Below, in pieces: positions 3,835-40,028 of a stretch of 64,000 nt of DNA. Under the pieces are notes generated by a model. That model saw only the letters and a program-made list of their open reading frames with translations. It was not told where the DNA came from and made no database searches. Positions within the stretch are counted from its first letter, which is position 1. The number at the start of each line of letters is the position of its first letter. A program made the position numbers and the translations under genes. Source of the DNA: Phaeosaccion multiseriatum (taxonomy: Eukaryota > Protista > Ochrophyta, other classes); the NCBI GenBank assembly GCA_965112735.1, contig OZ218954.1, forward strand, positions 4,092,001 to 4,156,000, read 5' to 3'.

Positions 3835-5500
3835 TCACCACCACTTTCCCTTTCCCTTGCCGCCCTTCTGTGAGTGACAAGCGACAAGAGCGGAGCGAAG
3901 AGAGGGAGGTGCGTGAGTGAAAAGTGGTGAGAGAGATACAGAGAGACGCATGGCAGGCACAACGTACCCTTCCTTTTCCCTTGCCGCCCTTCTGTGAGTG
4001 AAAGCAACAAGAGAGGGAGGTGTGTGAGTAAGACCTGTGAGAATATGACAGAGAGAGGATAGAAGGAAGAGGCGGAACAGACCTTTCTTTTGCGATGCTT
4101 CTTTCCCTTCTTGTTCTGATGATAAAGTGAGAGAGAGTGAAGGAGAAGTAGGAGGTGGGTGAGTGACAATCTAGACACAATCAAGAAAAGCGAGAGGATA
4201 GAAGGAGCGGAACACACCTTTCTCTTGCGATGCTTCTTTCCCTTGGACTTGTCCTTGGAAGAATCCTTGCTGTCCTTGGAGGAATCCTTGCTGTCCGAGA
4301 AATCCTTGCTGACAGATGCTACTGTCCACACAGGCTGAGGCGTGGGCTTTGGAGTGGTTGGGGGAGGGGAGGAAAAAGAGGGGGTTGTGGGGTGAGGGGA
4401 GGAGGAAGGAGCAAAGGTAGAGAGAGAGGCTGAGCAGGATACATGAGGAGGCTGGTCTTCTTCATTTGAAGCAGCACGAGGTGCCTGTGCCACGGGCAAA
4501 GCATGGAGTCTCTCGAGGCAGTGAATGCATACATCATACCTTTGCGGTCCACACAGGCGTGGGAGCGGGAGGGACTGGGGCTGGACAGGCGTAGACGTCA
4601 AGTCCGTGGTAGGTGCCGGGCGCACGGCAGCCACCAGGGGCTCCAACACAGCCGTCGGCGGAGTAGTCATCCTGACACTCGCCAGTGGTGTCGGTAGCAA
4701 AGTTGCACTCCGGACGGTGCGGGTTGAGGCCTCCCTCCCTGCAGCAGACGTAGCAGGAGGACATAGGGGCAGGGGTCGGAGCCACGGGAGGGTCCGTCCA
4801 GGTAGGCTTGGGCGTGGGAGGAGCCCTCCAGATAGGCGCAGGAGTGGGTACGTATGTGGGCGCCTTGGTGGGCTGTTGTCGGAGGAGCGAGAGCCGAAAG
4901 ATTGCAACAGATGCGTGAAGTGGCGCCGCGGGGAGGTGGAGTGGGAGGGGTGAGGAGAAAGTACAGGCCGGGCGAGGTTTAGCGGTAAGCACCAAGACGA
5001 GGTTTCCTTCATTGTAGTCTAGCGGGAATGCGACGAGCATCGGTGCCTCTGAGGAAGTAAATTCTGACCTTGTAGGTGGGTGCCGGAGTAGGGTGCATCG
5101 TCGGGGTGTACGGCGTGTTGTTGATGGGAGAGGGGCGGCCGGAGGGTGGCAAGAGATGCGAGGCACACGTAAAGTGCCGCACGAAGTGGAACGACGAGGG
5201 GAGGAGGAACAGGCAGAGGCAGAGGGGATCTTAAAAGCGGGGGCTTCTGGTCTTGCTTCTTTTACGGTAGCACAGGAAGCACATGGGCCTCTTGGACCAT
5301 TGCTGCCTTACCTTCATGGTAGGTGCGGGGGTAGTCCCCGTCCAGACAGGCGCGGGAGTGGGTCTAGACCAGTACCGGCGCCACGGTGACGACCTCAAAC
5401 TCCTGCGCTCAGGGTCGCGCTCACTCGGCTCGTCGTTGGCGATGGCCTGGTGCATGACCAAGAAGGCCAGCAGGGCGGTCACGAGGAAGGAGAGCCGCAT
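3835..5500 (-). CDS. Short paralogue of the repeat-protein gene: secreted protein with a Cys-rich module in place of the array
   Basis: Exon 5500-5312: MRLSFLVTALLAFLVMHQAIANDEPSERDPERRSLRSSPWRRYWSRPTPAPVWTGTTPAPTMK. Exon 4872-4540: PT-rich plus an 8-Cys segment SSCYVCCREG...YACP. Exon 4346-4218: SKDS block and KGKKHRKRK. Exon 4115-4083: NKKGKKHRKRK. Exon 3991-3968: KGGKGKGR. Exon 3867-3835: KGGKGKGKWW*. All phase-0 GT-AG. An alternative ATG lies at 5509. Confidence 0.8.
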
Positions 5501-7138
5501 GATGCTCATGTGATGACTTTTGACCTTGAGAGGCTTGTGTGTCTTTACAAGGAGTTGTCCCCTGCCTCCCTTAACGCCATGCCGGCCCAAAATTTTGCTT
5601 TAGCGACTCTTCTTGGGCAGTTGGCACTTCGGTGACTGGGGGCATTGGGAAATTGGGGCTTGGGTCGATGAGTTTGGGGGGCGGGGAGCAGGGGCTGGGG
5701 CAGCAGCAGGCGCAGCAGCAGCAAAGAGAGTCGCCCCTCTCACCCCCTCCTCCGCCTCGAACGGAGGGGCAGCAGCAGGCGCAGCAGCAGGCAGACCATC
5801 TCAAGGGATTGCTTGGGCTTGGGCTCGGGCTCGGCGGAGGAGGAGAAGGAGGGGTGGAGGAGGGGTAGAGGGGCAGGAGAAGATGGGATGGGGGCTCGTC
5901 CACGCCCCCTTTCCTTCTTGCACCTCATGCAAGTGGTCAAGGTCAGGGTCAGAGTCAGCCGCCGCCGCCACCGCCGCCGCAGCAGCAGCTGACCCCTCAA
6001 TAGCAGCAGCAGCAACAGATGAGTGTTTCTGCAGCAGCTCCAGGGGGGGATGGGAATGGGCATGGTGCCGCCCGAGATGCCACCACCACCACAGCAACAG
6101 GGGAGAGAGCGAGGGAGGGGCATGCAGGAGGTGGTGCTGCTGCGGGAGCGCCGTCCATCGACTTTGGCATTGCCCCCACGCCCGCAGATTGTAGGGGCAA
6201 GGGAGGAGGAGGCATGCAAGGCAAGCAAGGCAAGGCCAAGGGCGACGCAGCAGAGGCGGTGACGGCACCCAACGGGGCTGCTGCCGCTGCAACTGTGGCG
6301 GCCCCGAGGAGGGCCTCCCTCTCGAGCGGAGGCCTCATGATCCCGAGCAAGGCTCTGCTGAGAGCGAAGAGAGCCTCCACGCCTGCTTCTGCGAGTGCCC
6401 CTGCTACCACCACTGCTCCGACGCGTGAGAGAGATTCTTGCGGAGTGGAATTGGGGAGGGGGTGACATCCAGACATCCACGCAGGGGTCCGGGAAGGCGG
6501 AGGGAAGAACGGGGGCGGGTATCGAGGAGGAAGAAGGAAGCGGTATGGCAGAGGGAAGGTGGCACTGTTGCAAAGGTTTGCTTGGGAGGGAGTACGCGAC
6601 GGAAGCCGAGTGGTGGACTGATTGCAGGGAGGGAAGATGCGAAAGAGGTGGGCGGGTGAGCGAGAGAGAGGAAGGGAGGCGTAGAGCGAGGAGAGAGCTG
6701 GGGCCAGAGCGAGTTGGGGCAAGGTGACTGTGAACGACGGAGAGCGAGATGTTGAGAGAACTGAGGGGACGGCACGCGCGGTATTATCGGGGGTGTCTAG
6801 GTGAAAGTTTGCGTCAGTGACAGAATGCGAAGCAAGCGGAGCTCGTCAGCAAGACCTTGTTGTACGTGCATCTCAGAGGGGGAGAGGAAGCGAGGCGGAG
6901 AGCGACGAGGGGACGGGGGCAGAAAGAGACGTGACTGAGGCAGTTTGTGCGAGAGAGAGAGAGAGAGTGACACAGCTGAAGGGAAGGCCCGGGGAACGGT
7001 CGTCGAGCGATAGGGAGGGGAGACGTGAGGAGTGGAAACGACGAAGCAAGGGCTGCGGAACGCCGGAACCACACACACGCACACACACACACGGGGTGCG
7101 AAGCAAGCGCGTGGCAGCAGCTCAATAAGAATATTCAA

Positions 7139-7995
7139 TTGACGTCACTGTAGCTCACACTTCTCAGGGAATGTGCCTAATGCACACGCCTCCGCTTCGG
7201 GCCCAGCTGAGACACCCTTCTGTTCTGCACTGCTTCTTCACTCGCGGGGGGGGGGGGGAAGCAGTGCAGCACAGAAGGCTGTGTCAGCTGGGCCCGAAGA
7301 GGAGGCGTGTGTAGTTGACGTCACTGTAGCTCACACTTCTCAGGGAATGTGCCTGGCGTGCGTAGTTGACGTCACTGTAGCTCACACTTCTCAGGCTTCG
7401 CCCCGTGCCTAATGCACACGCCTCCGCTTCGGGCCCAGCTGAGACACCCTTCTGTTCTGCACTGCTTCTTCACTCGCGGGGGGGGGGGAGCAGTGCAGCA
7501 CAGAAGGCTGTGTCAGCTGGGCCCGAAGAGGAGGCGTGTGTAGTTGACGTCACTGTAGCTCACACTTCTCAGGGAATGTGCCTGGCGTGCGTAGTTGACG
7601 TCACTGTAGCTCACACTTCTCAGGCTTCGCCCCGTGCCTAATGCACACGCCTCCGCTTCGGGCCCAGCTGAGACACCCTTCTGTTCTGCACTGCTTCTTC
7701 ACTCGCGGGGGGGGGGGGAAGCAGTGCAGCACAGAAGGCTGTGTCAGCTGGGCCCGAAGAGGAGGCGTGTGTAGTTGACGTCACTGTAGCTCACACTTCT
7801 CAGGGAATGTGCCTGGCGTGCGTAGTTGACGTCACTGCAGCTCACACTTCTCAGGCTTCGCCCCGTGCCTAATGCACACGCCTCCGCTTCGGGCCCAGCT
7901 GAGACACCCTTCTGTTCTGCACTGCTTCTTCACTCGCGGGGGGGGGGGGAAGCAGTGCAGCACAGAAGGCTGTGTCAGCTGGGCCCGAAGCGGAG
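7139..7995. repeat. Tandem repeat (~230-bp unit, ~4 copies), each unit containing a ~55-bp-arm inverted repeat and TGACGTCA-bearing 30-mers
   Basis: Hairpins start at 7181, 7413, 7642 and 7873. The arm TGCACACGCCTCCGCTTCGGGCCCAGCTGAGACACCCTTCTGTTCTGCACTGCTTC pairs with GAAGCAGTGCAGCACAGAAGGCTGTGTCAGCTGGGCCCGAAGAGGAGGCGTGTGTA across a poly-G loop. There are 7 copies of TTGACGTCACTG(T/C)AGCTCACACTTCTCAGG. Confidence 0.92.
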
Positions 7996-9194: not shown

Positions 9195-9311
9195 CGGCAG
9201 CTGCTATGTGAGTATGCCTCTCACAGCCGAAGCAAGCGAAAGAATAAGAAGCACACACCAACCGCTTCTCCGCCCCAATTAACTCACCCGTCTTATTAGC
9301 TGGCTGGCTTG

Positions 9312-12300: not shown

Positions 12301-12927
12301 CGCTGCGCGGTGCACAGGCTCACACCCTGAGCAAGGAGCGGAGCACGAGACGCACGAAAAGCAACAGGCAGTTTCAGGAGGCAGCAGCCAGTACGGGGCG
12401 GAAGAGCGAGCACGAGCGAGAGAGCAGAGCCGCGTATCGGAATTTTGTAACACTCAGCAATGCTTCTTCGTCTCTCTCACCATGCAGCTGTTTGGTCCCC
12501 GGCACAAAGCGGTGGACCGTTTCAGCAGAGCTGCGCGATAGCATGCGTAATCGCCCTCACAAGCCACACGTGAAGTCCCGCTGAAGGTGGTGAGGTCACA
12601 GCTGTCCTTCCCACTGCAGACCACGTTACAGTTCTCAAACGTCTTGAAGGAGGGCTCGGGGTCCCACACGTTAACGCTACTACTGCAGGCATTGGAATCT
12701 GCCCCCTCTGCCGTGGGCAGGAAGGGGGCGGAGCAGACAAAGCTCCTGTCCTCCGTGGGGTCGCAGGCGCACGTTTCGTACAGGCCACGAATGGTCGTGT
12801 CTCCCCGGTACGCGTTAGCATCTCCGGCGGTGAAGCGCACGCACGCCTCTTTGAAGCTGAGGCTGCTGCCTCCCCCGCTGAGGGGGGCAAGGCCCAGCGC
12901 CGACAGCCCCGTCTTCAAGCCAATTAT
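9312..12927 (-). pseudogene. Duplicate of the Cys-rich gene, likely impaired
   Basis: Same exons as 155-1686. The start ATG reads ATA (~12925-12927), the exon-2 donor reads GC (GCGAGG, ~12163), and a 2.1-kb TIR element sits in intron 2. Exon frames are otherwise open, with in-frame indels. Confidence 0.55.
9944..12049. mobile_element. 2.1-kb non-autonomous DNA transposon-like insertion with ~31-bp terminal inverted repeats (CCC...GGG)
   Basis: The left end CCCTTGTATGTCAATTAAACCCCGATAAATGT matches the reverse complement of the right end ACATTTATCGGGGTTAATTGACATACAAGGG with one 1-nt indel. It is absent at the homologous site (~827) in copy 1. No recognisable transposase ORF and no clean TSD. 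Confidence 0.85.
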
Positions 12928-14181
12928 GATTCACACGTAGTCTGCCCTGGAGCTTAGTGTGAGCGACGTGTGCGGGGAAAGTGGAAGAGATCCGACGGAG
13001 GGATGAAAGTGGGAGGGGGGAAGCGAATCAGCACCAACCTCGATTCCCCTGCGATTCGACAAGGATAGAGGGTCCTCGCGGTCGTGCTACAGAGATAAAA
13101 AATAGAAGTACGAGATAGAATGCCAAGATGAACGGGAGCAGCGTATATTGCAGCGAGCTTCCCTGAACTCCCCCTCAGCAGGCGCAAAAACGCAGCGCCT
13201 GGCTGCCTGCAGGATAGACTTACCTTTGCCTGCTCCAAGGATCTCGGTCGTGCGGGTGAGAGACCTTGTGAGGGGGATAAAGCGCAATGGCAGCTCTGGG
13301 GGAGCAGAGCTCGTGTGTGTCGTTAATTTTGTAGTGGTGTTTTGCTCTTCCCCCCAACAGGCAAGAATTAGCGCGAACTGGTTGTCCAAACTTGCGTCGC
13401 CAGCCTGTATTCTCCTCCCCCCTATTTCCCTTATCATTCTTGGGGAAAAAATAGGCAAGTGAAAAGGCTATAAGAGCGGTATCGACCTGCACCTTACACA
13501 CCCAGTATACACTATCCTTGTCTAAGGTCTACAGCTCTTTGCGCCCAAAAAATGGCTCTTTTCTTCTGCTTGGTTTTGCGCGGTCATATGGGGTGGGAGG
13601 GGGGTGGACTTGGTGGGTGGGGGGTTGGGGGATGGAGACCAAGGGCAATGCAGTGAGAGAAGCACAGAGAGAGAGAGAGTGAAAGAGGGAGAGGGACAGA
13701 GAGTGAGAGGGAGATGGAGAGAGGGAGAAAAAGAGACGGTCTGACTGCGAAAAAGAGCAAACCGTAGAGGTGTATGGGGAGAGGAGGCTGTGAGTGGGAC
13801 ATACACCGCTTACCAACTCCTGCAGCCCTAGCCAGGGGGGGGGGCTTAGCCAGGCTCGTCGCGTAAAATTACCGGTACATTTTGTAACTGTTGCGTATGT
13901 TGCCCCCCAATTGCACACCGCAGACCCTCCGGAGGCCTGACGGTGTACGACGCGGTGGCCAAGGGCATGGAGGAGGTCAACCTCGGCAGCAGGACCATCA
14001 GCACCAAGCAGTGCCTTTCCTGGTTCAACTTCAGGTGGGTGGGATGGCAGTGAATGGAGGAGGCGGAGGAGGAGGATGGCAGTGGATGGGATGGAGCGGA
14101 TGGAGAAAGATGATGGCAGTGGATGGAGGTGGAGGATGGCATTGGACCATGAAGTGTGAGTGTGTGACTCTACACGCGTAC

Positions 14182-14219
14182 AAGGCCAGGAGGGCGGTGC
14201 CGAAGAAGGAGAAGCGCAT
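14182..14219 (-). pseudogene. Second copy of the decapitated family member (MRFSFFGTALLA)
   Basis: Duplicate of 3387-3424 within the segmental duplication, with the same truncation junction. Confidence 0.7.
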
Positions 14220-14633: not shown

Positions 14634-17600
14634 TCACCACCATTTCCCCTTTCCCTTGCCGCCCTTCTGTGAGTGACAAGCGACAAAAGCGGAGCGAAGA
14701 GAGGGAGGTGCGTGAGTAAAAAGTGTGTGAGAGAGAGAGTTCCCCGCGGACAAGAGCGAACAGACCTTTCTTTTGCGATGCTTCTTTCCCTTCTTGTTCT
14801 GATGACAAAGTGAGAGAGATGAAGGAGAAGTAGGAGGTGGGTGAGTGACAAGCTAGGCACACAAGAAAAAACCGAGAGGATAGAAGGAAGAGGCGGAACA
14901 GACCTTTCTTTTGCGATGCTTCTTTCCCTTCTTGTTCTGATGACAAAGTGAGAGAGAGTGAAGGAGAAGTAGGAGGTGGGTGAGTGACAATCTAGACACA
15001 ATCAAGAAAAGCGAGAGGATAGAAGGAACACACCTTTCTTTTGCGATGCTTCTTTCCCTTCTTGTTCTGATGACAAAGTGAGAGAGAGTGAAAGAGAAGT
15101 AGGAGGTGGGTGAGTGACAATCTAGACACAATCAAGAAAAGCGAGAGGATAGAAGGAGCGGAACAGACCTTTCTCTTGCGATGCTTCTTTCCCTTGGACT
15201 TGTCCTTGGAAGAATCCTTACTGTCCTTGGAGGAATCCTTGCTGTCCGAGGAATCCTTGCTGACAGACGTAGGTGCCGCTGTCCACACAGGCTGAGGCGT
15301 GGGCTTTGGAGTGGTTGGGGGAGGGAGAGAGAGTGGGGGAGGGGAGGAAGAAGAGGGAAGGGCAAGTGGGGTGAGGGGAGGAGGAAGGAGCCGGAAAGGA
15401 CGGGAATGGCATGGAGGGAGCTTTCCCCCTCACGGGTGAGATTGCTTACCTTCATGGTGGGGGCGGGCGTAGGTGCCGCTGTCCAGACTGGCTTGGTCGT
15501 GGGAGCGGGGGTAGGAGCGTCCGTAGGAGCCCTCGTGGGCTGTGGGCGGGAAAGCGAGCACGGGAAGGAAGGACGGACATGAAGTGGAGCAAGGGGTAAG
15601 AGACGCGTGAGGCTTAGCGGGGAGCGTAAAGCTGAAACGGGCCGATCACATGAGGTCGACGGGCACAGCAGACTGCCCATGACTGCTGAGATGGCGTACC
15701 TTCATCGTCGGGGCGAACGTAGGTGCGGCTGTCCAGACTGGCTTGGTCGTAGGAGCGGGGGTAGGTGCATCCGTAGGAGCCCTCGTGGGCTGTGGAAGGA
15801 AGGACGGACATGAAATGGAGCAAGAGTTAGGGAAAGGCGACGCTTCGGGGGGGCGTAGAGCTGAAGCGGGCCGATCACATGAGGTCGACGGGTACAGCAG
15901 ACTGCCCATGACTGCTGAGATTGCTCACCTTCATTGTCGGGGCGGGGGTAGGTGCATCCGTAGGAGCCCTCGTGGGCTGTGGGTGGGGAAGCGAGCACGG
16001 GAAGGAAGGATCGAAATGGAGCAAGGGGTAAGAGACGCGTGAGGCTTAGCGGGGAGCGTAGAGCTGAAACGGGCCGATCCCATGAGGTCGACGGGCACAG
16101 CAGACTGCCCATGACTGCTGAGATGGCTCACCTTCATGGTGGGCGCGAACGTAGGTGCCGCTGTCCAGACGGGCTTGGTCGTAGGAGCGGGGGTAGGTGC
16201 ATCCGTGGGAGCCCTCGTGGGCTGTGGGTGGGGAAGCGAGCACGGGAAGGAAGGACGGACATGAAGTGGAGCAAGGGGTAAGAGACGCGTGAGGCTTAGC
16301 GGGGAGCGTAGAGCTGAAACGGGCCGATCACATGAGCTCGACGGGCACAGCAGACTGCCCATGCCTGCTGAGATGACTCACCTTCATCGTCGGGGCGGGG
16401 GTAGGTGCATCCGTAGGAGCCCTCGTGGGCTGTGGGGGGGGAAGCGAGCAAGGGAAGGAAGGACGGACATGAAGTGGAGCAAGGGGTAAGAGACGCATGA
16501 GTGAGGCTTAGCGGGGAGCGTAGAGCTGAAGCGGGCCGATCACATGAGGTCGACGGGCACGGCGCACTGCCCATGACTGCTGAGATGGCTTACCTTCATG
16601 GTGGGGGCGGGCGTAGGTGCGGCTGTCCAGACTGGCTTGGTCGTAGGAGCGGGGGTAGGAGCGTCCGTAGGAGCCCTCGTGGGCTGTTAGTGGAGGAGCG
16701 AGCACGTGAAGGAAGGGCGGACATGAGATGGAGCAAGGGGTAAGAGACGCGTGAGGCTTAGCGGGGAGCGTAGAGCTGAAACGGGCCGATCACATGAGCT
16801 CGACGGGCACGGCGCACTGCCCATGACTGCTGAGATGGCTCACCTTCATGGTGGGGGCGGGGGTAGGTGCATCCGTAGGAGTCCTCGTGGGCTGTGGGTG
16901 GGGAAGCGAGCAAGGCAAGGAAGGATCGAAATGAAATGGAGCAAGCGTGAAGGAAAGGCGAGGCTTCGGGGGGGCGTAGAGCTGAAACGGGCCGATCACA
17001 TGAGGTCGACGGGCACAGCAGACTGCCCATGACGACTGAGATTGCTCACCTTCATCGTCGGGGCGGGGGTAGGTGCGGCTGTCCAGACTGGCTTGGTCGT
17101 AGGCGCGGGGGTAGGAGCGTCCGTAGGAGCCCTCGTGGGCTGTGGGTGGAGGGGCGAGCAAGAGAAGGAAGGGCGGACATGAAATGGAGCAAGGGGTAAG
17201 AGACGCGTGAGGCTTAGCGGGGAGCGTAGAGCTCAAACGGGCCGATCACATGAGCTCGACGGGCACAGCAGACTGCCCATGACTGCTGCGTTTGCTCACC
17301 TTCATCGTCGGGGCGGGGGTAGGTGCATCCGTGGGAGCCCTCGTGGGCTGTGGGTGGGGAAGCGAGCAAGGGAAGGAAGGACGGACATGAAGTGGAGCAA
17401 GGGGTAAGAGGCGCGTGAGGCTTAGCGGGGAGCGTAGAGCTCAAACGGGCCGATCACATGAGCTCGACGGGCACAGCAGACTGCCCATGACTGCTGAGAT
17501 TGCTTACCTCCATCGTAGGGGCGGGGGTAGGTGCATCCGTAGGAGCCCTCGTGGGCTGTGGGTGGGGAAGCGAGCAAGGGAAGGAAGGGCGGACATGAAG

Positions 17601-20600: not shown

Positions 20601-23600
20601 GGAAGGACGGACATGAAATGGAGCAAGGGGTAAGAGACGCGTGAGGCTTAGCTGGGAGCGTAGAGCTGAAACGGGCCGATCACATGAGCTCGACGGGCAC
20701 GGCGCACTGCCCATGACTGCTGAGATTGCTTACCTTCATCGTCGGGGCGGGCGTAGGTGCGGCTGTCCAGACTGGCTTGGTCGTGGGAGCGGGGGTAGGA
20801 GCGTCCGTAGGAGCCCTCGTGGCCTGTGGGTGGAGGAGCGAGCAAGGGAAGGAAGGGCGGACATGAAGTGGAGCAAGGGTTAAGAGACGCGTGAGGCTTA
20901 GCGGGGAGCGTAGAGCTCAAACGGGCCGATCACATGAGCTCGACGGGCACAGCAGACTGCCCATGACTGCTGAGATTGCTCACCTTCATTGTCGGGGCGG
21001 GTGTAGGTGCATCCGTAGGAGCCCTCGTGGGCTGTGGGTGGGGAAGCGAGCAAGGGAAGGAAGGACGGACATGAAGTGGAGCAAGGGGTAAGAGACGCGT
21101 GAGGCTTAGCGGGGAGCGTAGAGCTGAAACGGGCCGATCACATGAGCTCGACGGGCACAGCAGACGGCCCATGACTGCTGAGTTTGCTAACCTTCATCGT
21201 CGGGGCGGGGGTAGGTGCATCCGTAGGAGCCCTCGTGGGCTGTTGGTGGTGAGGCGAGCAAGGGAAGGAAGTCAGACACGAAGTGGGGCAAGTGGTAAGA
21301 GACGCGTGAGGCTTAGCGAGGAGCGTAGAGCTCAAACGGGCCGATCACATGAGCTCGACGGGCACCGCAGACCGCCCATGACTGCTGAGATTACTCACCT
21401 TCATCGTCGGGGCGGGGGTAGGTGCATCCGTAGGAGCCCTCGTGGGCTTGGGGTGGGGAAGCGAGCAAGGGAAGGAAGGACGGACATGAAGTGGAGCAAG
21501 GGGTAAGAGACGCGTGAGTGAGGCTTAGCGGGGAGCGTAGAGCTCAAACGGGCCGATCACATGAGCTCGACGGGCACAGCAGACAGCCCATGACTGCTGA
21601 GATTACTCACCTTCATCGTCGGGGCGGGGGTAGGTGCATCCGTAGGAGCCCTCGTGGGCTTGGGGTGGGGAAGCGAGCAAGGGAAGGAAGGACGGACATG
21701 AAATGGAGCAAGGGGTAAGAGACGCGTGAGGCTTAGCTGGGAGCGTAGAGCTGAAACGGGCCGATCACATGAGCTCGACGGGCACGGCGCACTGCCCATG
21801 ACTGCTGAGATTGCTTACCTTCATCGTCGGGGCGGGCGTAGGTGCGGCTGTCCAGACTGGCTTGGTCGTGGGAGCGGGGGTAGGAGCGTCCGTAGGAGCC
21901 CTCGTGGGCTGTGGGTGGAGGAGCGAGCAAGGGAAGGAAGGGCGGACATGAAGTGGAGCAAGGGTTAAGAGACGCGTGAGGCTTAGCGGGGAGCGTAGAG
22001 CTCAAACGGGCCGATCACATGAGCTCGACGGGCACAGCAGACTGCCCATGACTGCTGAGATGGCTCACCTTCATTGTCGGGGCGGGTGTAGGTGCATCCG
22101 TAGGAGCCCTCGTGGGCTGTGGGTGGGGAAGCGAGCAAGGGAAGGAAGGACGGACATGAAGTGGAGCAAGGGGTAAGAGACGCGTGAGGCTTAGCGGGGA
22201 GCGTAGAGCTCAAACGGGCCGATCACATGAGCTCGACGGGCACAGCAGACTGCCCATGACTGCTGAGATTGCTCACCTTCATTGTCGGGGCGGGGGTAGG
22301 TGCATCCGTAGGAGCCCTCGTGGGCTGTGGGTGGGGAAGCGAGCAAGGGAAGGAAGGACGGACATGAAGTGGAGCAAGGGGTAAGAGACGCGTGAGTGAG
22401 GCTTAGCGGGGAGCGTAGAGCTGAAACGGGCCGATCACATGAGCTCGACGGGACACAGCAGACTGCCCATGACTGCTGAGATTACTCACCTTCATCGTCG
22501 GGGCGGGGGTAGGTGCATCCGTAGGAGCCCTCGTGGGCTGTGGGTGGGGAAGCGAGCAAGGGAAGGAAGGACGGAAGGGGTAGGAGACGCGTGAGGCTTA
22601 GCGGGGAGCGTAGAGCTCAAACGGGCCGATCACATGAGCTCGACGGGCACAGCAGACTGCCCATGACTGCTGAGATGGCTCACCTTCATAGTCGGGGCGG
22701 GCGTAGGTGCGGCGGTCCAGACTGGCTTGGTCGTAGGAGCGGGGGTAGGAGCGTCCGTGGGAGCCCTCGTGGGCTGTGAGTGCAGGAGCGAGCACGGGAA
22801 GGAAGGACGGACATGAAGTGGAGCAAGGGGTAAGAGACGCGTGAGGCTTAGCGGGGAGCGTAGAGCTGAAACGGGCCGATCACATGAGCTCGACGGGACA
22901 CAGCAGACTGCCCATGACTGCTGAGATTACTCACCTTCATCGTCGGGGCGGGGGTAGGTGCATCCGTAGGAGCCCTCGTGGGCTGTGGGTGGAGGAGCGA
23001 GCAAGGGAAGGAAGGGCGGACATGAAGTGGAGCAAGGGGTAAGAGACGCGTGAGGCTTAGCGGGGAGCGTAGAGGTCAAACGGGCCGATCACATGAGCTC
23101 GACGGGCACAGCAGACTGCCCATGACTGCTGAGATTGCTCACCTTCATTGTCGGGGCGGGGGTAGGTGCATCCGTAGGAGCCCTCGTGGGCTGTGGGTGG
23201 GGAAGCGAGCAAGGGAAGGAAGGACGGAAGGGGTAGGAGACGCTTGAGGCTTAGCGGGGAGCGTAGAGCTCAAACGGGCCGATCACATGAGCTCGACGGG
23301 CACAGCAGACTGCCCATGACTGCTGAGATGGCTCACCTTCATAGTCGGGGCGGGCGTAGGTGCGGCGGTCCAGACTGGCTTGGTCGTAGGAGCGGGGGTA
23401 GGAGCGTCCGTGGGAGCCCTCGTGGGCTGTGGGTGGAGGAGCGAGCACGGGAAGGAAGGACGGACATGAAGTGGAGCAAGGGGTAAGAGACGCGTGAGGC
23501 TTAGCGGGGAACGTAGAGCAGAAACGGGCCGATCACATGAGCTCGACGGGCACAGCAGACTGCCCATGACGGCTGAGATTGCTCACCTTCATTGTCGGGG

Positions 23601-26600
23601 CGGGGGTAGGTGCATCCGTGGGAGCCCTCGTGTGCTGTGGGTGGGGAAGCGAGCAAGGGAAGGAAGGACGGACATGAAGTGGAGCAAGGGGTAAGAGACG
23701 CGTGAGTGAGGCTTAGCGGGGAGCGTAGAGCTGAAACGGGCCGATCACATGAGCTCGACGGGACACAGCAGACTGCCCATGACTGCTGAGATTACTCACC
23801 TTCATCGTCGGGGCGGGGGTAGGAGCATCCGTAGGAGCCCTCGTGGGCTGTGGGTGGGGAAGCGAGCAAGGGAAGGAGGGACGGAAGGGGTAGGAGGCGC
23901 GTGAGGCTTAGCGGGGAGCGTAGAGCTCAAGCGGGCCGATCACATGAGGTCGACGGGCACAGCAGACTGCCCATGACTGCTGAGATGGCTTACCTTCATC
24001 GTCGGGGCGGGGGTAGGTGCATCCGTAGGAGCCCTCGTGGGCTTGGGGTGGGGAAGCGAGCAAGGGAAGGAAGGACGGACATGAAATGGAGCAAGGGGTA
24101 AGAGACGCGTGAGGCTTAGCTGGGAGCGTAGAGCTGAAACGGGCCGATCACATGAGCTCGACGGGCACGGCGCACTGCCCATGACTGCTGAGATTGCTTA
24201 CCTTCATCGTGGGGGCGGGCGTAGGTGCGGCTGTCCAGACTGGCTTGGTCGTAGGCGCGGGGGTAGGAGCGTCCGTAGGAGCCCTCGTGGGCTGTGAGTG
24301 GAGGAGCGAGCACGGGAAGGAAGGACGGATGAAGTGGAGCAAGGGGTAAGAGACGCGTGAAGCTTAGCGGGGAGCGTAGAGCTGAAACGGGCCGATCACA
24401 TGAGCTCGACGGGCACAGCAGACTGCCCATGACGGCTAAGGTTACTCGCCTTCATCGTCGGGGCGGGGGTAGGTGCGTCCGTAGGAGCCCTCGTGGGCTG
24501 TTGGTGGTGAGGCGAGCAAGGGAAGAAAGTCAGACACGAAGTGGGGCAAGTGGTAAGAGACGCGTGAGGCTTAGCGGGGAGCGTAGAGCTCAAACGGGCC
24601 GATCACATGAGCTCGACGGGCACCGCAGACTGCCCATGACTGCTGAGATTACTCACCTTCATCGTCGGGGCGGGGGTAGGTGCATCCGTAGGAGCCCTCG
24701 TGGGCTTGGGGTGGGGAAGCGAGCAAGGGAAGGAAGGACGGACATGAAGTGGAGCAAGGGGTAAGAGACGCGTGAGTGAGGCTTAGCGGGGAGCGTAGAG
24801 CTGAAACGGGCCGATCACATGAGCTCGACGGGCACGGCGCACTGCCCATGACTGCTGAGATTACTCACCTTCATCGTCGGGGCGGGGGTAGGTGCATCCG
24901 TAGGAGCCCTCGTGGGCTTGGGGTGGGGAAGCGAGCAAGGGAAGGAAGGACGGACATGAAATGGAGCAAGGGGTAAGAGACGCGTGAGGCTTAGCTGGGA
25001 GCGTAGAGCTGAAACGGGCCGATCACATGAGCTCGACGGGCACGGCGCACTGCCCATGACTGCTGAGATTGCTTACCTTCATCGTCGGGGCGGGCGTAGG
25101 TGCGGCTGTCCAGACTGGCTTGGTCGTGGGAGCGGGGGTAGGAGCGTCCGTAGGAGCCCTCGTGGGCTGTGGGTGGAGGAGCGAGCAAGGGAAGGAAGGA
25201 CGGACATGAAGTGGAGCAAGGGGTAAGAGACGCGTGAGGCTTAGCGGGGAGCGTAGAGCTCAAACGGGCCGATCACATGAGCTCGACCGGCACCGCAGAC
25301 TGCCCATGACTGCTGAGATTGCTCACCTTCATTGTCGGGGCGGGGGTAGGTGCATCCGTAGGAGCCCTCGTGGGCTGTGGGTGGGGAAGCGAGCAAGGGA
25401 AGGAAGGACGGACATGAAGTGGAGCAAGGGGTAAGAGACGCGTGAGTGAGGCTTAGCGGGGAGCGTAGAGCTGAAACGGGCCGATCACATGAGCTCGACG
25501 GGACACAGCAGACTGCCCATGACGGCTAAGGTTACTCGCCTTCATCGTCGGGGCGGGGGTAGGTGCGTCCGTAGGAGCCCTCGTGGGCTGTTGGTGGTGA
25601 GGCGAGCAAGGGAAGAAAGTCAGACACGAAGTGGGGCAAGTGGTAAGAGACGCGTGAGGCTTAGCGGGGAGCGTAGAGCTCAAACGGGCCGATCACATGA
25701 GCTCGACGGGCACCGCAGACTGCCCATGACTGCTGAGATTACTCACCTTCATCGTCGGGGCGGGCGTAGGTGCGGCTGTCCAGACTGGCTTGGTCGTAGG
25801 CGCGGGGGTAGGAGCGTCCGTAGGAGCCCTCGTGGGCTGTGGGTGGAGGAGCGAGCAAGGGAAGGAAGGGCGGACATGAAGTGGAGCAAGGGTTAAGAGA
25901 CGCGTGAGGCTTAGCGGGGAGCGTAGAGCTCAAACGGGCCGATCACATGAGCTCGACGGGCACAGCAGACTGCCCATGACTGCTGAGATTGCTCACCTTC
26001 ATTGTCGGGGCGGGTGTAGGTGCATCCGTAGGAGCCCTCGTGGGCTGTGGGTGGGGAAGCGAGCAAGGGAAGGAAGGACGGACATGAAGTGGAGCAAGGG
26101 GTAAGAGACGCGTGATGCTTAGCGGGGAGCGTAGAGCTGAAACGGGCCGATCACATGAGCTCGACGGGCACAGCAGACTGCCCATGACTGCTGAGATGGC
26201 TCACCTTCATCGTCGGGGCGGGGGTAGGTGCATCCGTAGGAGCCCTCGTGGGCTGTGGGTGGGGAAGCGAGCAAGGGAAGGAAGGGCGGACATGAAGTGG
26301 AGCAAGGGGTAAGAGACGCGTGAGGCTTAGCGGGGAGCGTAGAGGTCAAACGGGCCGATCACATGAGCTCGACGGGCACAGCAGACTGCCCATGACGGCT
26401 AAGGTTACTCGCCTTCATCGTCGGGGCGGGGGTAGGTGCGTCCGTAGGAGCCCTCGTGGGCTGTTGGTGGTGAGGCGAGCAAGGGAAGAAAGTCAGACAC
26501 GAAGTGGGGCAAGTGGTAAGAGACGCGTGAGGCTTAGCGGGGAGCGTAGAGCTCAAACGGGCCGATCACATGAGCTCGACGGGCACCGCAGACTGCCCAT

Positions 26601-29600
26601 GACTGCTGAGATTACTCACCTTCATCGTCGGGGCGGGGGTAGGTGCATCCGTAGGAGCCCTCGTGGGCTGTGGGTGGAGGAGCGAGCAAGGGAAGGAAGG
26701 GCGGACATGAAGTGGAGCAAGGGGTAAGAGACGCGTGAGTGAAGCTTAGCGGGGAGCGTAGAGCTGAAACGGGCCGATCACATGAGCTCGACGGCACACA
26801 GCAGACTGCCCATGACTGCTGAGATTACTCACCTTCATCGTCGGGGCGGGGGTAGGTGCATCCGTAGGAGCCCTCGTGGGCTGTGGGTGGGGAAGCGAGC
26901 AAGGGAAGGAAGGATCGAAATGGAACAAGGGGTAAGAGACGCGTGAGGCTTAGCGGGGAGCGTAGAGCTGAAACGGGCCGATCACATGAGCTCGACGGGC
27001 ACGGCGCACTGCCCATGACTGCTGAGATTGCTTACCTTCATCGTCGGGGCGGGCGTAGGTGCGGCTGTCCAGACTGGCTTGGTCGTAGGCGCGGGGGTAG
27101 GAGCGTCCGTAGGAGCCCTCGTGGGCTGTGGGTGGAGGAGCGAGCAAGGGAAGGAAGGACGGACATGAAGTGGAGCAAGGGGTAAGAGACGCGTGAGGCT
27201 TAGCGGGGAGCGTAGAGCTCAAACGGGCCGATCACATGAGCTCGACCGGCACCGCAGACTGCCCATGACTGCTGAGATTGCTCACCTTCATTGTCGGGGC
27301 GGGGGTAGGTGCATCCGTAGGAGCCCTCGTGGGCTGTGGGTGGGGAAGCGAGCAAGGGAAGGAAGGACGGACATGAAGTGGAGCAAGGGGTAAGAGACGC
27401 GTGAGTGAGGCTTAGCGGGGAGCGTAGAGCTGAAACGGGCCGATCACATGAGCTCGACGGGACACAGCAGACTGCCCATGACTGCTGAGATTACTCACCT
27501 TCATCGTCGGGGCGGGGGTAGGTGCATCCGTAGGAGCCCTCGTGGGCTGTGGGTGGGGAAGCGAGCAAGGGAAGGAAGGGCGGACATGAAGTGGAGCAAG
27601 GGGTAAGAGACGCGTGAGGCTTAGCGGGGAGCGTAGAGGTCAAACGGGCCGATCACATGAGCTCGACGGGCACAGCAGACTGCCCATGACTGCTGAGATT
27701 ACTCACCTTCATCGTCGGGGCGGGGGTAGGTGCATCCGTAGGAGCCCTCGTGGGCTGTGGGTGGGGAAGCGAGCAAGGGAAGGAAGGGCGGACATGAAGT
27801 GGAGCAAGGGGTAAGAGACGCGTGAGGCTTAGCGGGGAGCGTAGAGGTCAAACGGGCCGATCACATGAGCTCGACGGGCACAGCAGACTGCCCATGACTG
27901 CTGAGATTACTCACCTTCATCGTCGGGGCGGGGGTAGGTGCATCCGTAGGAGCCCTCGTGGGCTGTGGGTGGGGAAGCGAGCAAGGGAAGGAAGGGCGGA
28001 CATGAAGTGGAGCAAGGGGTAAGAGACGCGTGAGGCTTAGCGGGGAGCGTAGAGGTCAAACGGGCCGATCACATGAGCTCGACGGGCACAGCAGACTGCC
28101 CATGACTGCTGAGATTACTCACCTTCATCGTCGGGGCGGGGGTAGGTGCATCCGTAGGAGCCCTCGTGGGCTGTGGGTGGGGAAGCGAGCAAGGGAAGGA
28201 AGGACGGACATGAAGTCGAGCAAGGGGTAAGAGACGCGTGAGGCTTAGCGGGGAGCGTAGAGCTGAAACGGGCCGATCACATGAGGTCGACGGGCACGGC
28301 GCACTGCCCATGACTGCTGAGATTGCTTACCTTCATGGTGGGGGCGGGCGTAGGTGCGGCTGTCCAGACTGGCTTGGTCGTAGGCGCGGGGGTAGGAGCG
28401 TCCGTAGGAGCCCTCGTGGGCTGTGGGTGGAGGAGCGAGCAAGGGAAGGAAGGGCGGACATGCAGTGGAGCAAGGGGTAGGAGACGCGTGAGGCTTAGCG
28501 GGGAGCGTAGAGCTCAAACAGGCCGATCGAATGAGCTCGACGGGCACCGCAGACTGCCCCTGACGGTTGAGATTGCTCACCTTCATCGTCGGGGCGGGGG
28601 TAGGTGCATCCGTAGGAGCCCTCGTGGGCTGTGGGTGGGGAAGCGAGCAAGGGAAGGAAGGACGGACATGAAATGGAGCAAGAGGTAAGAGACGCTGAGG
28701 CTTAGCGGGGAGCGTAGAGCTGAAACGGGCCGATCACATGAGGTCGACGGGCACGGCGCACTGCCCATGACTGCTGAGATTGCTTACCTTCATGGTGGGG
28801 GCGGGCGTAGGTGCCGCTGTCCAGACTGGCTTGGTCGTAGGAGCGGGGGTAGGAGCGTCCGTAGGAGCCCTCGTGGGCTGTGAGTGGAGGAGCGAGCACG
28901 GGAAGGAAGGACGGACATGATATGGAGCAAGGGGTAAGAGACGCGTGAGGCTTAGCGGGGAGCGTAGAGCTGAAACGGGCCGATCACATGAGCTCGACGG
29001 GCACAGCAGACTGCCCATGCCTGCTGAGATGACTCACCTTCATCGTCGGGGCGGGGGTAGGTGCATCCGTAGGAGCCCTCGTGGGCTGAGGGGGGGGAAG
29101 CGAGCAAGGGAAGGAAGGACGGACATGAGGAAGGAAGGATCGAAATGGAACAAGGGGTAAGAGACGCGTGAGTGAGGCTTAGCGGGGAGCGTAGAGCTGA
29201 AACGAGCCGATCACATGAGCTCGACGGGCACAGCAGACTTCCCCTGACTGCTGAGATTGCTTACCTTCATCGTGGGGGCGGGCGTAGGTGCGGCTGTCCA
29301 GACTGGCTTGGTCGTAGGCGCGGGGGTAGGAACGTCCGTGGGAGCCCTCGTGGGCTGTGAGTGGAGGAGCGAGCACGGGAAGGAAGGACGGACATGAAAT
29401 GGAGCAAGGGGTAAGAGACGCGTGAGGCTTAGCGGGGAGCGTAGAGCTGAAACGGGCCGATCACATGAGCTCGACGGGCACAGCAGACTGCCCATGCCTG
29501 CTGAGATGACTCACCTTCATGGTGGGGGCGGGGGTAGGTGCATCCGTAGGAGCCCTCGTGGGCTGTGGGTGGGGAAGCGAGCAAGGGAAGGAAGGACGGA

Positions 29601-32149
29601 CATGAAGTGGAGCAAGGGGTAAGAGACGCGCGAGGCTTAGCGGGGAGCGTAGAGCGCAAAAGGGCCGATCACATGAGCTCGACGGGCACCGCAGACTGCC
29701 CATGCCTGCTGAGATTACTCACCTTCATCGTCGGGGCGGGGGTAGGTGCATCCGTAGGAGCCCTCGTGGGCTGAGGGGGGGGAAGCGAGCACGGGAAGGA
29801 AGGACGGACATGAAGTGGAGCAAGGGGTAAGAGACGCGTGAGTGAGGCTTAGCGGGGAGCGTAGAGCTGAAACGGGCCGATCACATGAGGTCGACGGGCA
29901 CGGCGCACTGCCTATGACTGCTGAGATTGCTTACCTTCATCGTCGGGGCGGGCGTAGGTGCGGCTGTCCAGACTGGCTTGGTCGTAGGCGCGGGGGTAGG
30001 TGCATCCGTAGGAGCCCTCGTGGGCTGTGGGTGGGGAAGCGAGCAAGGGAAGGAAGGACGGACATGAAATGGAGCAAGGGGTAAGAGACGCGTGAGGCTT
30101 AGCGGGGAGCGTAGAGCTGAAACGGGCCGATCACATGAGGTCGACGGGCACAGCAGACGGCCCATGACTGCTGAGTTTGCTTACCTTCATCGTCGGGGCG
30201 GGGGTAGGTGCATCCGTAGGAGCCCTCGTGGGCTGTGGGTGGGGAAGCGAGCAAGGGAAGGAAGGACGGACATGAAGTGGAGCAAGGGGTAAGAGACGCG
30301 TGAGTGAGGCTTAGCGGGGAGCGTAGAGCTGAAACGGGCCGATCACATGAGCTCGACGGGACACAGCAGACTGCCCATGACTGCTGAGATTACTCACCTT
30401 CATTGTCGGGGCGGGGGTAGGAGCATCCGTAGGAGCCCTCGTGGGCTGTGGGTGGGGAAGCGAGCACGGGAAGGAAGGGCGGACATGAAGTGGAGCAAGG
30501 GGTAAGAGACGCGTGAGGCTTAGCTGGGAGCGTAGAGCTGAAACGGGACGATCACATGAGGTCGCCGGGCACAGCAGACTGCCCATGACTGCTGAGATGG
30601 CTCACCTTCATGGTCGGGGCGGGGGTAGGTGCATCCGTAGGAGCCCTCGTGGGCTGTGGGTGGGGAAGCGAGCAAGGGAAGGAAGGATGGACATGAAATG
30701 GAGCAAGGGGTAAGAGACGCGTGATGCTTAGCGGGGAGCGTAGAGCTGAAACGGGCCGATCACATGAGCTCGACGGGCACAGCAGACTGCCCATGACTGC
30801 TGAGATGGCTCACCTTCATCGTCGGGGCGGGGGTAGGTGCATCCGTAGGAGCCCTCGTGGGCTGTGGGTGGGGAAGCGAGCACGGGAAGGAAGGATCGAA
30901 ATGGAACAAGGGGTAAGAGACGCGTGAGGCTTAGCGGGGAGCGTAGAGCTGAAACGGGCCGATCACATGAGCTCGACGGGCACGGCGCACTGCCCATGAC
31001 TGCTGAGATGGCGTACCTTCATGGTGGGGGCGGGCGTAGGTGCGGCTGTCCAGACTGGCTTGGTCGTGGGAGCGGGGGTAGGAGCGTCCGTAGGAGCCCT
31101 CGTGGGCTGTGAGTGGAGGAGCGAGCAAGGGAAGGAAGGGCGGACATGATATGGAGCAAGGGGTAAGAGACGCGTGAGGCTTAGCGGGGAGCGTAGAGCT
31201 CAAACGGGCCGATCACATGAGCTCGACCGGCACCGCAGACTGCCCATGACGGCTGAGATTGCTCACCTTCATCGTCGGGGCGGGGGTAGGTGCATCCGTA
31301 GGAGCCCTCGTGGGCTGTGGGTGGGGAAGCGAGCAAGGGAAGGAAGGACGGACATGAAGTGGAGCAAGGGGTAAGAGACGCGTGAGTGAGGCTTAGCGGG
31401 GAGCGTAGAGCTGAAACGGGCCGATCACATGAGCTCGACGGGACACAGCAGACTGCCCATGACTGCTGAGATTACTCACCTTCATTGTCGGGGCGGGGGT
31501 AGGAGCATCCGTAGGAGCCCTCGTGGGCTGTGGGTGGGGAAGCGAGCAAGGGAAGGAAGGACGGACATGAAGTGGAGCAAGGGGTAAGAGACGCGTGAGT
31601 GAGGCTTAGCGGGGAGCGTAGAGCTGAAACGGGCCGATCACATGAGCTCGACGGGCACAGCAGACTGCCTATGACTGCTGAGATTGCCCACCTTCATGGT
31701 CGGGGCGGGGGTCGGAGCGTCCGTCCAAGTAGGCTGGGGCGTAGGCACGGGCGGGGCCGTCCACGTTGGCGCGGGCGTGGGTGCGTACGTGGGAGGCTCC
31801 GTGGGCTTGTGGACGGCGGAGCGAGGACGGGAAGGCACACGCAGTTGGCGCGCGAATTGGAGCGAGGTGAGGAGGAAGGCGGGGGCTACGTGAGGAGAGC
31901 AATATTGGCTTCACATATCACGAAAAGCACGGTGCCTCTCAAGGCAGGCTCTCTTACCTTCGTGGTGGGCACCGGGGTAGCCCCTGTCCAGACAGGCGCG
32001 GGAGTGGGGCTGGACCAGTACCGACTCCACCGGGATTTTAGCATCCTGGCTTCAGGAACATCACGGTCCGTCCTCTCGTCGTTCTCGGAGGTGGCCCGGC
32101 TGACGGCGAGGAAGGCCAGGAGGGCGGTGCCGAAGAAGGAGACACGCAT
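14634..32149 (-). CDS. Giant secreted Pro/Thr-rich (mucin-like) repeat protein with SKDS block and polybasic K/G tail; ~81 exons, ~1,670 aa if all exons are included
   Basis: Exon 1, 32149-31958: MRVSFFGTALLAFLAVSRATSENDERTDRDVPEARMLKSRWSRYWSSPTPAPVWTGATPVPTTK then GTAAG. Exon 2, 31805-31692: PTEPPTYAPTPAPTW...PTMK. About 74 repeat exons lie between ~31527 and 15450. Exon 15303-15169 encodes PTPQPVW...SKDSSDSKDSSKDSKDSSKDKSKGKKHRKRK. Three 33-nt exons encode NKKGKKHRKRK (15066-15034, 14936-14904, 14798-14766). The last exon, 14666-14634, encodes KGGKGKGKWW*. All junctions are phase 0 with AG/GT ends (a few exceptions are listed in findings). Confidence 0.85.
15450..31691 (-). repeat. Tandem array of ~74 exon+intron modules (units mostly ~208 or ~250 bp)
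   Basis: Minus-strand unit: ...cccacag|CCCACGAGGGCTCCTACGGATGCACCTACCCCCGCCCCGACGATGAAG|gtgag...(~160-nt intron). About 53 short (48-nt, 16-aa) and 21 long (90-nt, 30-aa) exons by manual count. Confidence 0.95.
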
Positions 32150-33495: not shown

Positions 33496-33840
33496 TCAAT
33501 ACTTGCCCTTGCCCTTGTTGCCCCTCCCCTTCCCCTTGCCCCTCCCCTTGCCCCTCCCCTTCCCCTTGCCCTTCCCCTTGTTGCCCCTCCCCTTCCCCTT
33601 ACCCTTGTTGCCCCTCCCCTTACCCTTGCCCTTCCCCTTGTTGCCCCTCCCCTTGCCCTTGCCCTTCCCCCTACCCCTCTGCGAGCGAGAGACAAGCGAC
33701 AGACAAGCGAGGGGGGGAGAGGAGAGAGATCGAAGAAGGGTCATGAGTAGAGCCAACACGTTGTAGTGGAAGTACAGGGGAACAAAACGTCAGTAGCTCA
33801 CCTTTCCCCTCTTCCCCTTCGAGCTGTCGGAGCTGGAAGA

Positions 33841-33878
<38 letters not shown>

Positions 33879-34101
33879 CCGAGGAGCAGTCGTAGCTGTC
33901 CCCCTTCGAGGAGTCGTGGCTCACGTTCTTTCCGGGCTTGGTCGGGGGAGGGGAAGTCCAGGGGGCGGGCGCCACAGGGACCGACCCCGTGAGCTCGCGT
34001 TTCTTCAACTCGTCGCTGGCGGGCTCCCCGATCTTGGCGGTGGCCTGGTTGGTGATGGCGAGGAAGGCCAGGAGGGCGGTGCCGAAGAAGGAGAAACGCA
34101 T
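33496..34101 (-). CDS. Small secreted Ser-rich / Lys-Gly-Arg-rich protein (160 aa), third family member
   Basis: Exon 1, 34101-33802: MRFSFFGTALLAFLAITNQATAKIGEPASDELKKRELTGSVPVAPAPWTSPPP...[26 protein letters not shown] then GTGAG. Exon 2, 33678-33496, after ctcgcag: RGRGKGKGKGRGNKGKG...KGKY*. Same signal peptide and upstream sequence as the giant gene. Confidence 0.8.

Positions 34102-36686: not shown

Positions 36687-36717
<31 letters not shown>

Positions 36718-39144: not shown

Positions 39145-39175
<31 letters not shown>

Positions 39176-39978: not shown

Positions 39979-40028
<50 letters not shown>

Follow-up and report, generated by a model that had tools for sequence, protein, structure and literature searches.

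A family of three genes, here called A, B and C, was found in a 64,000-nucleotide stretch of the genome of the ochrophyte Phaeosaccion multiseriatum (positions 4,092,001 to 4,156,000 of contig OZ218954.1, assembly GCA_965112735.1; this whole stretch is hereafter called the window). The genes lie head to tail and were modelled on the minus strand, from position 34101 to position 3835. They encode paralogous proteins with secretory-type N-termini, middle regions that differ from gene to gene and strongly polycationic C-terminal tails. The predicted peptides are under purifying selection in the predicted frame, as judged from variation among repeats and paralogues, and, within the sensitivity of the searches made, the family is an orphan and lineage-specific. 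We somewhat favour the view that the products are secreted matrix or cell-covering proteins, probably O-glycosylated, whose polycationic tail would bind polyanionic extracellular material. Proteins of this kind are themselves known. What is new here is a set of sequence-orphan, low-complexity, putatively secreted proteins of matrix or biomineral type with an unusual construction from exon cassettes and micro-exons.

Gene models, signal peptides and polycationic tails

The window has a GC content of approximately 54–63% and contains eukaryotic genes with introns. The models of A, B and C were derived from the genomic sequence alone, and all features of the three genes described below lie on the minus strand. 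Gene A runs from an ATG at 5500 to a stop at 3835 and has six exons that encode 246 amino acids (aa), with a predicted isoelectric point (pI) of 10.0. Gene B (ATG at 32149, stop at 14634) comprises 81 exons, in which 5007 coding nucleotides (nt) are spread over 17,516 bp. Its product of 1668 aa (approximately 172 kDa, pI 11) consists of 28% Pro, 24% Thr and 18% Ala (52.5% Pro plus Thr, 70% when Ala is included), with 1.7% Trp. Gene C (ATG at 34101, stop at 33496) has two exons and encodes 160 aa, of which 21% are Gly, 18% Lys and 17% Ser. All 89 modelled exons of the three genes are in phase 0 and have an intact open reading frame (ORF), and the exon modules are interchangeable. The introns are of the GT-AG type in A and C, and likewise in B apart from four, three of which are GC-AG and one of which has a GG donor.

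The first exon of each gene carries a signal peptide, a propeptide and an R-x-L motif. In gene A (5312..5500; 63 aa; donor gtaagg) the signal peptide MRLSFLVTALLAFLVMHQAIA is followed by a mixed-charge propeptide, RSL at residues 33–35 and a Trp/Pro/Thr (W/P/T) segment, SSPWRRYWSRPTPAPVWTGTTPAPTMK. In gene B (31958..32149; 64 aa) the signal peptide is MRVSFFGTALLAFLAVSRATS, followed by the propeptide, RML at residues 35–37 and a W/P/T segment. The corresponding exon of gene C (33802..34101; 100 aa) encodes the signal peptide MRFSFFGTALLAFLAITNQATA, the propeptide, REL at residues 35–37, the stretch PAPWT..PPPTKPG and a poly-Ser/Asp block ending in KGKRGK. All three N-termini conform to the pattern MR(L/V/F)SF(L/F)(V/G)TALLAFL, as the first-pass annotation had proposed for three genes. 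The signal exon itself, however, occurs five times in the window, the two additional copies being truncated. Neither of these copies (MRFSFFGTALLALYA...) has a recognizable continuation. The fourth (14166..14219) lies downstream of gene B and is probably a relic; the fifth (3371..3424) lies downstream of gene A, in the duplicated counterpart of the segment that carries the fourth. An upstream block (GAAGCCCCAACTGCCCAAGA..., approximately 150 nt before the ATG; 34102..34300 in gene C) is also common to A, B and C. Because both this block and the signal exon are shared, the promoter and 5' untranslated region must have been duplicated together with the signal exon, and co-regulation of the three genes is predicted.

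The signal peptides are of canonical form. Their hydrophobic h-regions reach Kyte-Doolittle values of 2.3–2.9, with a basic n-region (MR) before them and cleavage sites of the A-x-A type, with small residues at positions −3/−1 (AIA, ATS and ATA). The first residue past the predicted cleavage site (N, E or K in the three proteins) differs from the aromatic one that import into complex plastids would call for. No hydrophobic segment was found past the signal peptide in the three proteins, in which the 19-aa windows after residue 25 peak at a Kyte-Doolittle value of 0.42. Thus, the products contain neither a transmembrane segment nor a glycosylphosphatidylinositol (GPI) signal, and they are predicted to be soluble and secreted.

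Each protein contains one R-x-L, which starts 12–14 residues past the signal peptide (residue 33 in A, reading RSLR; residue 35 in B, reading RMLK; residue 35 in C, reading RELT). In a three-way alignment, few columns are invariant from the signal peptide to the PAP-W-T block, and the R and L of this motif belong to them; the motif is not found at repeat ends. The segment that precedes it had been described as short and acidic; the single, conserved R-x-L holds for all three proteins, whereas the segment proved to be of mixed charge (net approximately −1 to 0). In addition, RSLR of gene A matches a minimal R-x-x-R site, and gene C has KKR. A likeness to oomycete RxLR effectors, which had also been pointed out, did not survive closer comparison. 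These effectors likewise have a signal peptide with R-x-L within approximately 15 residues, and gene A reads RSLR. In the effectors, however, RxLR is conserved across the family within approximately 60 aa of the signal peptide and is usually followed by dEER, whereas in the present family the full RxLR is present only in A and no dEER follows it. Acidic residues stand before the motif in the present proteins and not after it, and a WY-type effector domain is absent from A, B and C.

At their C-terminal ends, the proteins combine Ser/Asp/Lys blocks with polybasic tails. All of the strings originally reported here, the blocks as well as the KGKKHRKRK or KGKGKG tails ending in WW or Y, were located on the minus strand within 3835-34101. 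The string SKDSSKDSKDSSKDKSK is common to A and B and is followed by KGKKHRKRK, and DSSSSDSSK occurs in C; the Ser/Asp blocks proper are SKDSSKDSKDSSKD and the poly-Ser/Asp block of C. In gene A, exon 3 (4218..4346; 43 aa) encodes PTPQPVWT..SKDFSDSKDSSKDSKDSSKDKSKGKKHRKRK, that is, a Ser/Asp/Lys block and then the first polybasic unit. The equivalent Ser/Asp/Lys exon of gene B (15169..15303; 45 aa) encodes PTPQPVWTAAPTSVSKDSSDSKDSSKDSKDSSKDKSKGKKHRKRK. The tails of A and B are continued by micro-exons of 24–33 nt. Three of these complete gene A (3835..4115), all preceded by cag, followed by gt and in phase 0, and they encode NKKGKKHRKRK (4115-4083), KGGKGKGR (3991-3968) and KGGKGKGKWW-stop (3867-3835), so that the tail begins with KGKKHRKRK and ends in KGGKGKGKWW. 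In gene B (14634..15066), KGKKHRKRK is followed by three copies of NKKGKKHRKRK (15066-15034, 14936-14904 and 14798-14766) and by KGGKGKGKWW-stop (14666-14634), KGGKGKGR being confined to A. The tail of gene C is encoded by a separate exon (33496..33678) that follows the poly-Ser/Asp block and specifies a 60-aa (K/R)G repeat, RGRGKGKGKGRGNKGKGKGKG...KGKY-stop, ending in Y. There are thus only two types of tail, that of A and B and that of C.

The net charge of the tail is +24 in A and +28 in C. At least five Lys per 14-aa window are found throughout the last 53–67 residues of A, B and C; KxxK occurs 12, 17 and 2 times, and dibasic pairs 13, 20 and 4 times, in A, B and C respectively. The four NKKGKKHRKRK micro-exons of A and B are identical in nucleotide sequence, and their introns differ. 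A reading of the tails as products of intron retention was considered, as the unspliced frame is open through two introns of A and would give Leu/Ser-rich pseudo-transmembrane segments. It was rejected because the later K/G exons would then be out of frame, because intron lengths (for example 91 and 100 nt in two tail introns of A) are not multiples of three, and because the tail exons are identical where the introns vary.

The similarity of A and B is due in part to a recent segmental duplication, in which 1-4412 matches 9158-15391 at 87–95% identity. This duplication spans the 3' parts of both genes and approximately 4 kb downstream of them, whereas the 5' exons of A and B are only approximately 73% identical. 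Within the duplicated segment, the B copy carries an insertion of approximately 2.1 kb (9942-12050) and the A copy one of approximately 440 bp (2676-3118).

The cassette array of gene B and selection on the predicted peptides

The middle regions consist of an 8-Cys domain in A, 74 Pro/Thr-rich (PT) cassettes in B and the poly-Ser/Asp block in C. Exon 2 of gene A (4540..4872; 111 aa) encodes a PT/W-rich segment, the 8-Cys domain with the spacing C-x2-CC-x12-C-x9-C-x8-C-x6-C-x14-C, and a further PT segment. The first of these segments, to which the 8-Cys domain is fused, is homologous to exon 2 of gene B (31692..31805; 38 aa; PTEPPTYAPTPAPTWTAPPVPTPQPTWTDAPTPAPTMK). A prediction of the fold of the 8-Cys domain with AlphaFold2 from the single sequence gave no usable model (predicted local distance difference test score, pLDDT, of 54.8).

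The cassette array of gene B (15450..31527) consists of 74 units of one exon and one intron. In 53 of these the exon is 48 nt long and encodes PTRAPTDAPTPAPTMK, and in the other 21 it is 90 nt long and encodes ...TTKPVWTAAPTPAPTMK; the 30-aa cassettes contain one Trp and the 16-aa cassettes none. The introns are approximately 160 nt long, with ACAG, CAAG or TCAG as acceptors. Exon and intron have been co-amplified as units of 208 or 250 bp, which are approximately 94–97% identical, and short (S) and long (L) cassettes follow each other in irregular order (SSLSSSSLSSL...). GC donors (AAG/GCGAGT) are present in the units starting at 26460, 25587 and 24497, and the GG donor in the unit starting at 18224. 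The three GC-donor units are all preceded by the variant acceptor context caccaccaacag, and because they have this context in common, a single GC-donor variant appears to have been spread by duplication within the array. A relic of a 16-codon PT cassette (TPYTPTMHPTPAPTYK) is also present in intron 1 of gene A (5069..5116). It has kept its GT donor, the AG of its acceptor is replaced by AC, and it is probably a dead exon.

Exon-per-repeat structural genes are known from fibrillar collagens, with their 54-bp exons, and from the PEVK exons of titin. Like these, gene B is a long array of short phase-0 exons, an arrangement in which expansion, contraction and exon skipping are safe for the reading frame. 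The sequences are unrelated, however, and in gene B exon and intron are amplified together.

Variation among the cassettes was used to assess coding status. From the 74 units, 48 of approximately 208 bp and 16 of approximately 250 bp, chosen by size windows, were aligned. Nucleotide diversity in the 208-bp units was 0.008 at codon position 1, 0.003 at position 2, 0.067 at position 3 and 0.060 in introns; in the 250-bp units, the values were 0.016, 0.008, 0.112 and 0.082 respectively. Variation at position 3 and in the introns was thus approximately 14 times that at positions 1 and 2, and position 3 could not be distinguished from the intron. Similarly, the density of minor alleles was 0.003–0.006 at positions 1 and 2, as against 0.04–0.08 at position 3 and 0.04 in the introns, and variable columns were fewer at positions 1 and 2 than in either of the other two classes (Fisher p 0.00025–0.044). 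Between the paralogues A and B, the ratio of nonsynonymous to synonymous substitution rates (dN/dS) was lowest for the PT/W segment (0.17), followed by the Ser/Asp/Lys exon (0.25) and exon 1 (0.39).

These values bear on the least probable of the explanations considered, in which the locus consists of non-functional repeats or pseudogenes and the exons are artefacts of a CT/GA-rich tandem repeat. Searches for RNA and for homologues were both empty, as this explanation would have it, and decayed pieces do occur, in the form of the relic cassette that lacks an acceptor, the pair of orphan signal exons and the GG donor. Repeat decay does not account for the approximately 14-fold constraint on positions 1 and 2, for dN/dS values of 0.17–0.39 or for phase 0 and intact frames in 89 of 89 exons. 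Because this signature of purifying selection recurs in the cassettes, the paralogues and the micro-exons, mere repeat DNA is strongly disfavoured.

Composition, proposed role and comparison with known systems

Homologues of the family were sought in several collections. Pfam gave nothing above cut-off for the family proteins, only sub-threshold noise, and no match was found in the PDB at E ≤10. Exon 1 of gene C and the Cys exon of gene A had no match in a set of 5.8 billion proteins. A phmmer search of 1.84 billion representatives had two hits, both of them giant bacterial proteins with DUF11/Cna-B domains; these were judged to be spurious, as their scores summed weak stretches and the cysteines were unaligned. 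In the JGI metagenomes, a profile scan and a search with a degenerate DNA pattern for PTPAPTMK/GT produced only chance matches of 8 aa. The best scores in the ESM Atlas, 0.68 and 0.77, were too low to be of use, and the neighbours there were generic mucin-like proteins or small prepro-peptides. String searches of the literature with the repeat peptides also returned nothing relevant. Evidently, the proteome of the organism itself is not among the collections searched. The likeness to silica proteins had from the start been put forward as one of composition, with homology not shown, and the absence of a homologue from Pfam, the PDB, both protein sets and the JGI metagenomes agrees with that wording.

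The role that we favour would proceed as follows. The shared promoter and signal/propeptide exon would route the product into the endoplasmic reticulum (ER). The propeptide of 12–16 residues would then probably be removed by a cut at the conserved R-x-L or next to it, at basic residues. The Pro/Thr/Ala-rich modules would probably be hydroxylated and O-glycosylated to form an extended, mucin- or arabinogalactan protein (AGP)-like rod, which in gene B would reach approximately 1500 aa and 74 cassettes. Phosphorylation is likely in the Ser/Asp(/Lys) block. The C-terminal tail, with a net charge of +24 to +28, would bind polyanions electrostatically and so anchor or cross-link the cell covering. 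Candidate ligands are wall polysaccharides of acidic or sulfated type, mineral surfaces (silica, for example) and the phospho-Ser/Asp blocks of partner molecules; in the last case, binding of tails to acidic blocks would give zwitterionic self-assembly. The earlier proposal of a modular extracellular family in which the tail anchors a variable middle region fits the modular genes, the signal peptides, the differing middles and the polycationic C-terminus, but for its biomineralization part a compositional likeness is all that was found.

The PT-rich rods have equally good parallels in mucins and Lys-rich AGPs. Gene B, with a signal peptide and 74 tandem repeats dominated by Pro and Thr, has the features of a mucin-like Pro/Thr/Ser (PTS) protein. 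The PTS domains of mucins and the Lys-rich classical AGPs (such as AtAGP17/18/19 and LeAGP-1) combine a signal peptide with more than 50% Pro/Ala/Ser/Thr and a short Lys-rich module in extended extracellular rods. A, B and C share with them the signal peptide, runs of AP and TP dipeptides that are expected to be O-glycosylated, and a Lys-rich module. However, they lack a GPI-anchor signal and end in KGKWW or KGKY, their polybasic tail is far stronger and longer, and there is no homology. In mucins, moreover, the repeats usually lie within one large exon, whereas in gene B each repeat has its own exon and a homogenized intron.

Several points weigh against the proposed role. The signal peptides were called by simple rules and not with SignalP. 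RNA evidence was sought in public runs, but only one 2024 sample holds the locus, and its runs are evidently DNA, as the contigs built from them continue straight through the introns and depth is flat at approximately 170–200x over 3700–5700; the only joints in the run contigs over that interval are cross-overs between paralogues. The GG donor of the unit starting at 18224 might disrupt the transcript of gene B. The number of cassettes in B, which is an assembly-based count over a 17-kb array, could be affected by the assembly. The tails of A and B count as one observation and not two, because they were copied by the recent segmental duplication. Finally, since there is no homologue of known function, the functional steps, from cleavage, glycosylation and phosphorylation to the tail ligand and the cellular role, are inferred from composition.

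A different role, in biosilica, another biomineral or a scale, is suggested by diatom proteins. Silaffins and related diatom proteins have an ER signal peptide followed by RXL, which is also found at repeat ends, and carry phosphoserines (PMC4557024, PMC9650480). The RXL motif serves in their proteolytic processing, and their lysines bear polyamine or methyl modifications. KXXK and pentalysine clusters, the latter defined as five Lys within 12–14 aa, target proteins to silica (PMC9650480, PMC4557024). The proteins of the present family might accordingly be functional analogues of silaffins, silacidins or cingulins, that is, zwitterionic, RXL-processed precursors with phosphoserines and modified lysines whose lysine clusters target them to a mineral-forming vesicle, where they would direct the formation of the mineral or become embedded in it. 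We regard this as unlikely, although the layout corresponds in several respects, with a signal peptide, RXL 12–14 residues further on and Ser-rich and Lys-cluster regions. An RXL immediately behind the signal peptide has been described for Sil1p and other silica proteins of diatoms (PMC4557024), the tails fit the definition of a pentalysine cluster (PMC9650480), with 12, 17 and 2 KxxK in A, B and C, and gene C couples a poly-Ser/Asp block to a tail of +28 in a manner resembling zwitterionic silaffins. All of this is compositional, however, and KxxK and Lys clusters are also common in polybasic proteins unrelated to minerals.

In detail, the silaffins (Sil1p of Cylindrotheca fusiformis; tpSil1-4 of Thalassiosira pseudonana) and silacidins resemble the present proteins in having an ER signal peptide, an RXL soon after it and low-complexity sequence rich in Ser and Lys clusters. 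They also combine acidic Ser/Asp with a polycationic block, and are lineage-specific without a conserved fold (PMC4557024, PMC9650480). By contrast, A, B and C have no sequence homology to them, have a single RXL and none at each repeat end, and have Lys clusters confined to a C-terminal tail that is encoded by micro-exons. They also contain large Pro/Thr/Ala-rich rods and, in A, the 8-Cys domain. Cingulins (CinW/CinY) are similarly secreted and repetitive, with Trp- and KXXK-bearing segments and a post-signal RXL, but in cingulins KXXK regions alternate with W/Y-rich regions along the whole protein (PMC4557024). The cingulin-like grammar suggested in the first-pass annotation was not borne out on this point. 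The repeats of the present proteins are PT-rich with 0–1 Trp per cassette, Trp makes up no more than 1.7% of B, and K-rich sequence is only terminal, in the last 53–67 aa, with no alternation with aromatic domains.

Silica proteins are of low complexity, specific to their lineages and invisible to homology searches (PMC4742977). Because they escape such searches, the lack of homologues speaks neither for nor against a biomineral role. In the haptophyte Prymnesium neolepis, silica is associated with an unrelated Pro/Lys-rich lipocalin protein (PMC4742977). A still bolder proposal, which we hold to be rather less likely again, is that the family is an independent, non-homologous toolkit of the silaffin/silacidin type, in which polylysine tails on RXL-processed, zwitterionic proteins would act in targeting to, and assembly in, a compartment that forms a mineral (silica) or scales, gene B would supply a glycosylated spacer of approximately 0.4 micrometres, and the cassette arrays would tune length and charge. 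If this were true, RXL processing and lysine-cluster targeting would be older than the diatoms or would have evolved repeatedly.

It is quite improbable, more so than either mineral-related proposal, that the genes encode precursors of secreted cationic peptides of antimicrobial, allelopathic or cell-penetrating type, from which kexin- or furin-like cuts at KR, RK or KK would release Lys/Arg/Gly/Trp-rich peptides. The prepro organization, the 13, 20 and 4 dibasic pairs and the C-terminus KGKGKWW would be in keeping with such precursors. Also, the language-model neighbours of exon 1 of gene C include alpha-factor and apidaecin precursors, and exon 1 of gene A has a sub-threshold match to a Conotoxin-precursor Pfam family; both are weak, with scores under 0.8 in the Atlas and a Pfam match of 13 bits, far short of the 25-bit cut-off. 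A PT rod of 1500 aa in B and a Cys domain in A, both under purifying selection, would moreover be needless in a peptide precursor.

For the favoured role in a secreted matrix or cell covering, and provided that the genes are expressed as modelled, the family would represent protist matrix proteins built from interchangeable phase-0 modules, with a promoter/signal exon, variable middles and micro-exon tails. It would also supply sequence-unrelated candidates with the motif grammar of diatom biosilica proteins. This raises the question of whether RXL processing and lysine-cluster targeting or anchoring are general outside the diatoms.

Other features of the window

The duplicated segments downstream of A and B also contain a Cys-rich ORF of approximately 153 aa with at least 14 Cys, present at 1225-1686 and 12454-12918, both on the minus strand. 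The first copy may have its own signal peptide, MIGLKLGLSALGLAPLSGGGSS, and the second has ATA in place of ATG. No Pfam match above cut-off and no homologue in the 5.8-billion protein set was found for it. Models in which the orphan signal exons at 14219 and 3424 were joined to these downstream Cys-rich ORFs were rejected, as an in-frame acceptor was not found. Two plus-strand ORFs, 2752-3258 and 13891-14223, lie antisense over the orphan signal exons. They hold a globular-looking stretch (…SGGLTVYDAVAKGMEEVNLGSRTISTK…), which may be a piece of some other gene or element. A tandem array at 7139-7996, in the interval that separates genes A and B, contains 3.7 copies of a 231-bp unit that are 97% identical, and hairpins and TGACGTCA boxes are attributed to this region.

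In the part of the window beyond the three genes, the 13-mer AGTTGGTGATACA occurs 12 times on both strands between 36758 and 63134, with 0 expected in 100 shuffles. It lies mostly within CAGTTGGTGATACAGC and reads ..QQLVIQQ.. in long ORFs of low complexity. The A/B/C cluster does not contain the 13-mer, which might represent a short dispersed element or else a motif related to regulation or splicing; a string search of the literature with it returned nothing relevant. Among the ORFs that neighbour the cluster, Pfam recognized only a pentatricopeptide repeat protein and a kinesin. The gene for the former lies at 36193-36975 on the minus strand. On the plus strand, 38913-47570 is occupied by a multi-exon gene resembling kinesin-4/KIF21, with long poly-Gly, poly-Glu and poly-Ser insertions; in the ESM Atlas, the neighbours of the kinesin exon are a mixture of Streptophyta and Haptophyta. 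Its motor exon (41448-41753) matches PF00225 with E=3.5e-41, and a KIF21A-like coiled-coil piece is found at 45300-46280.

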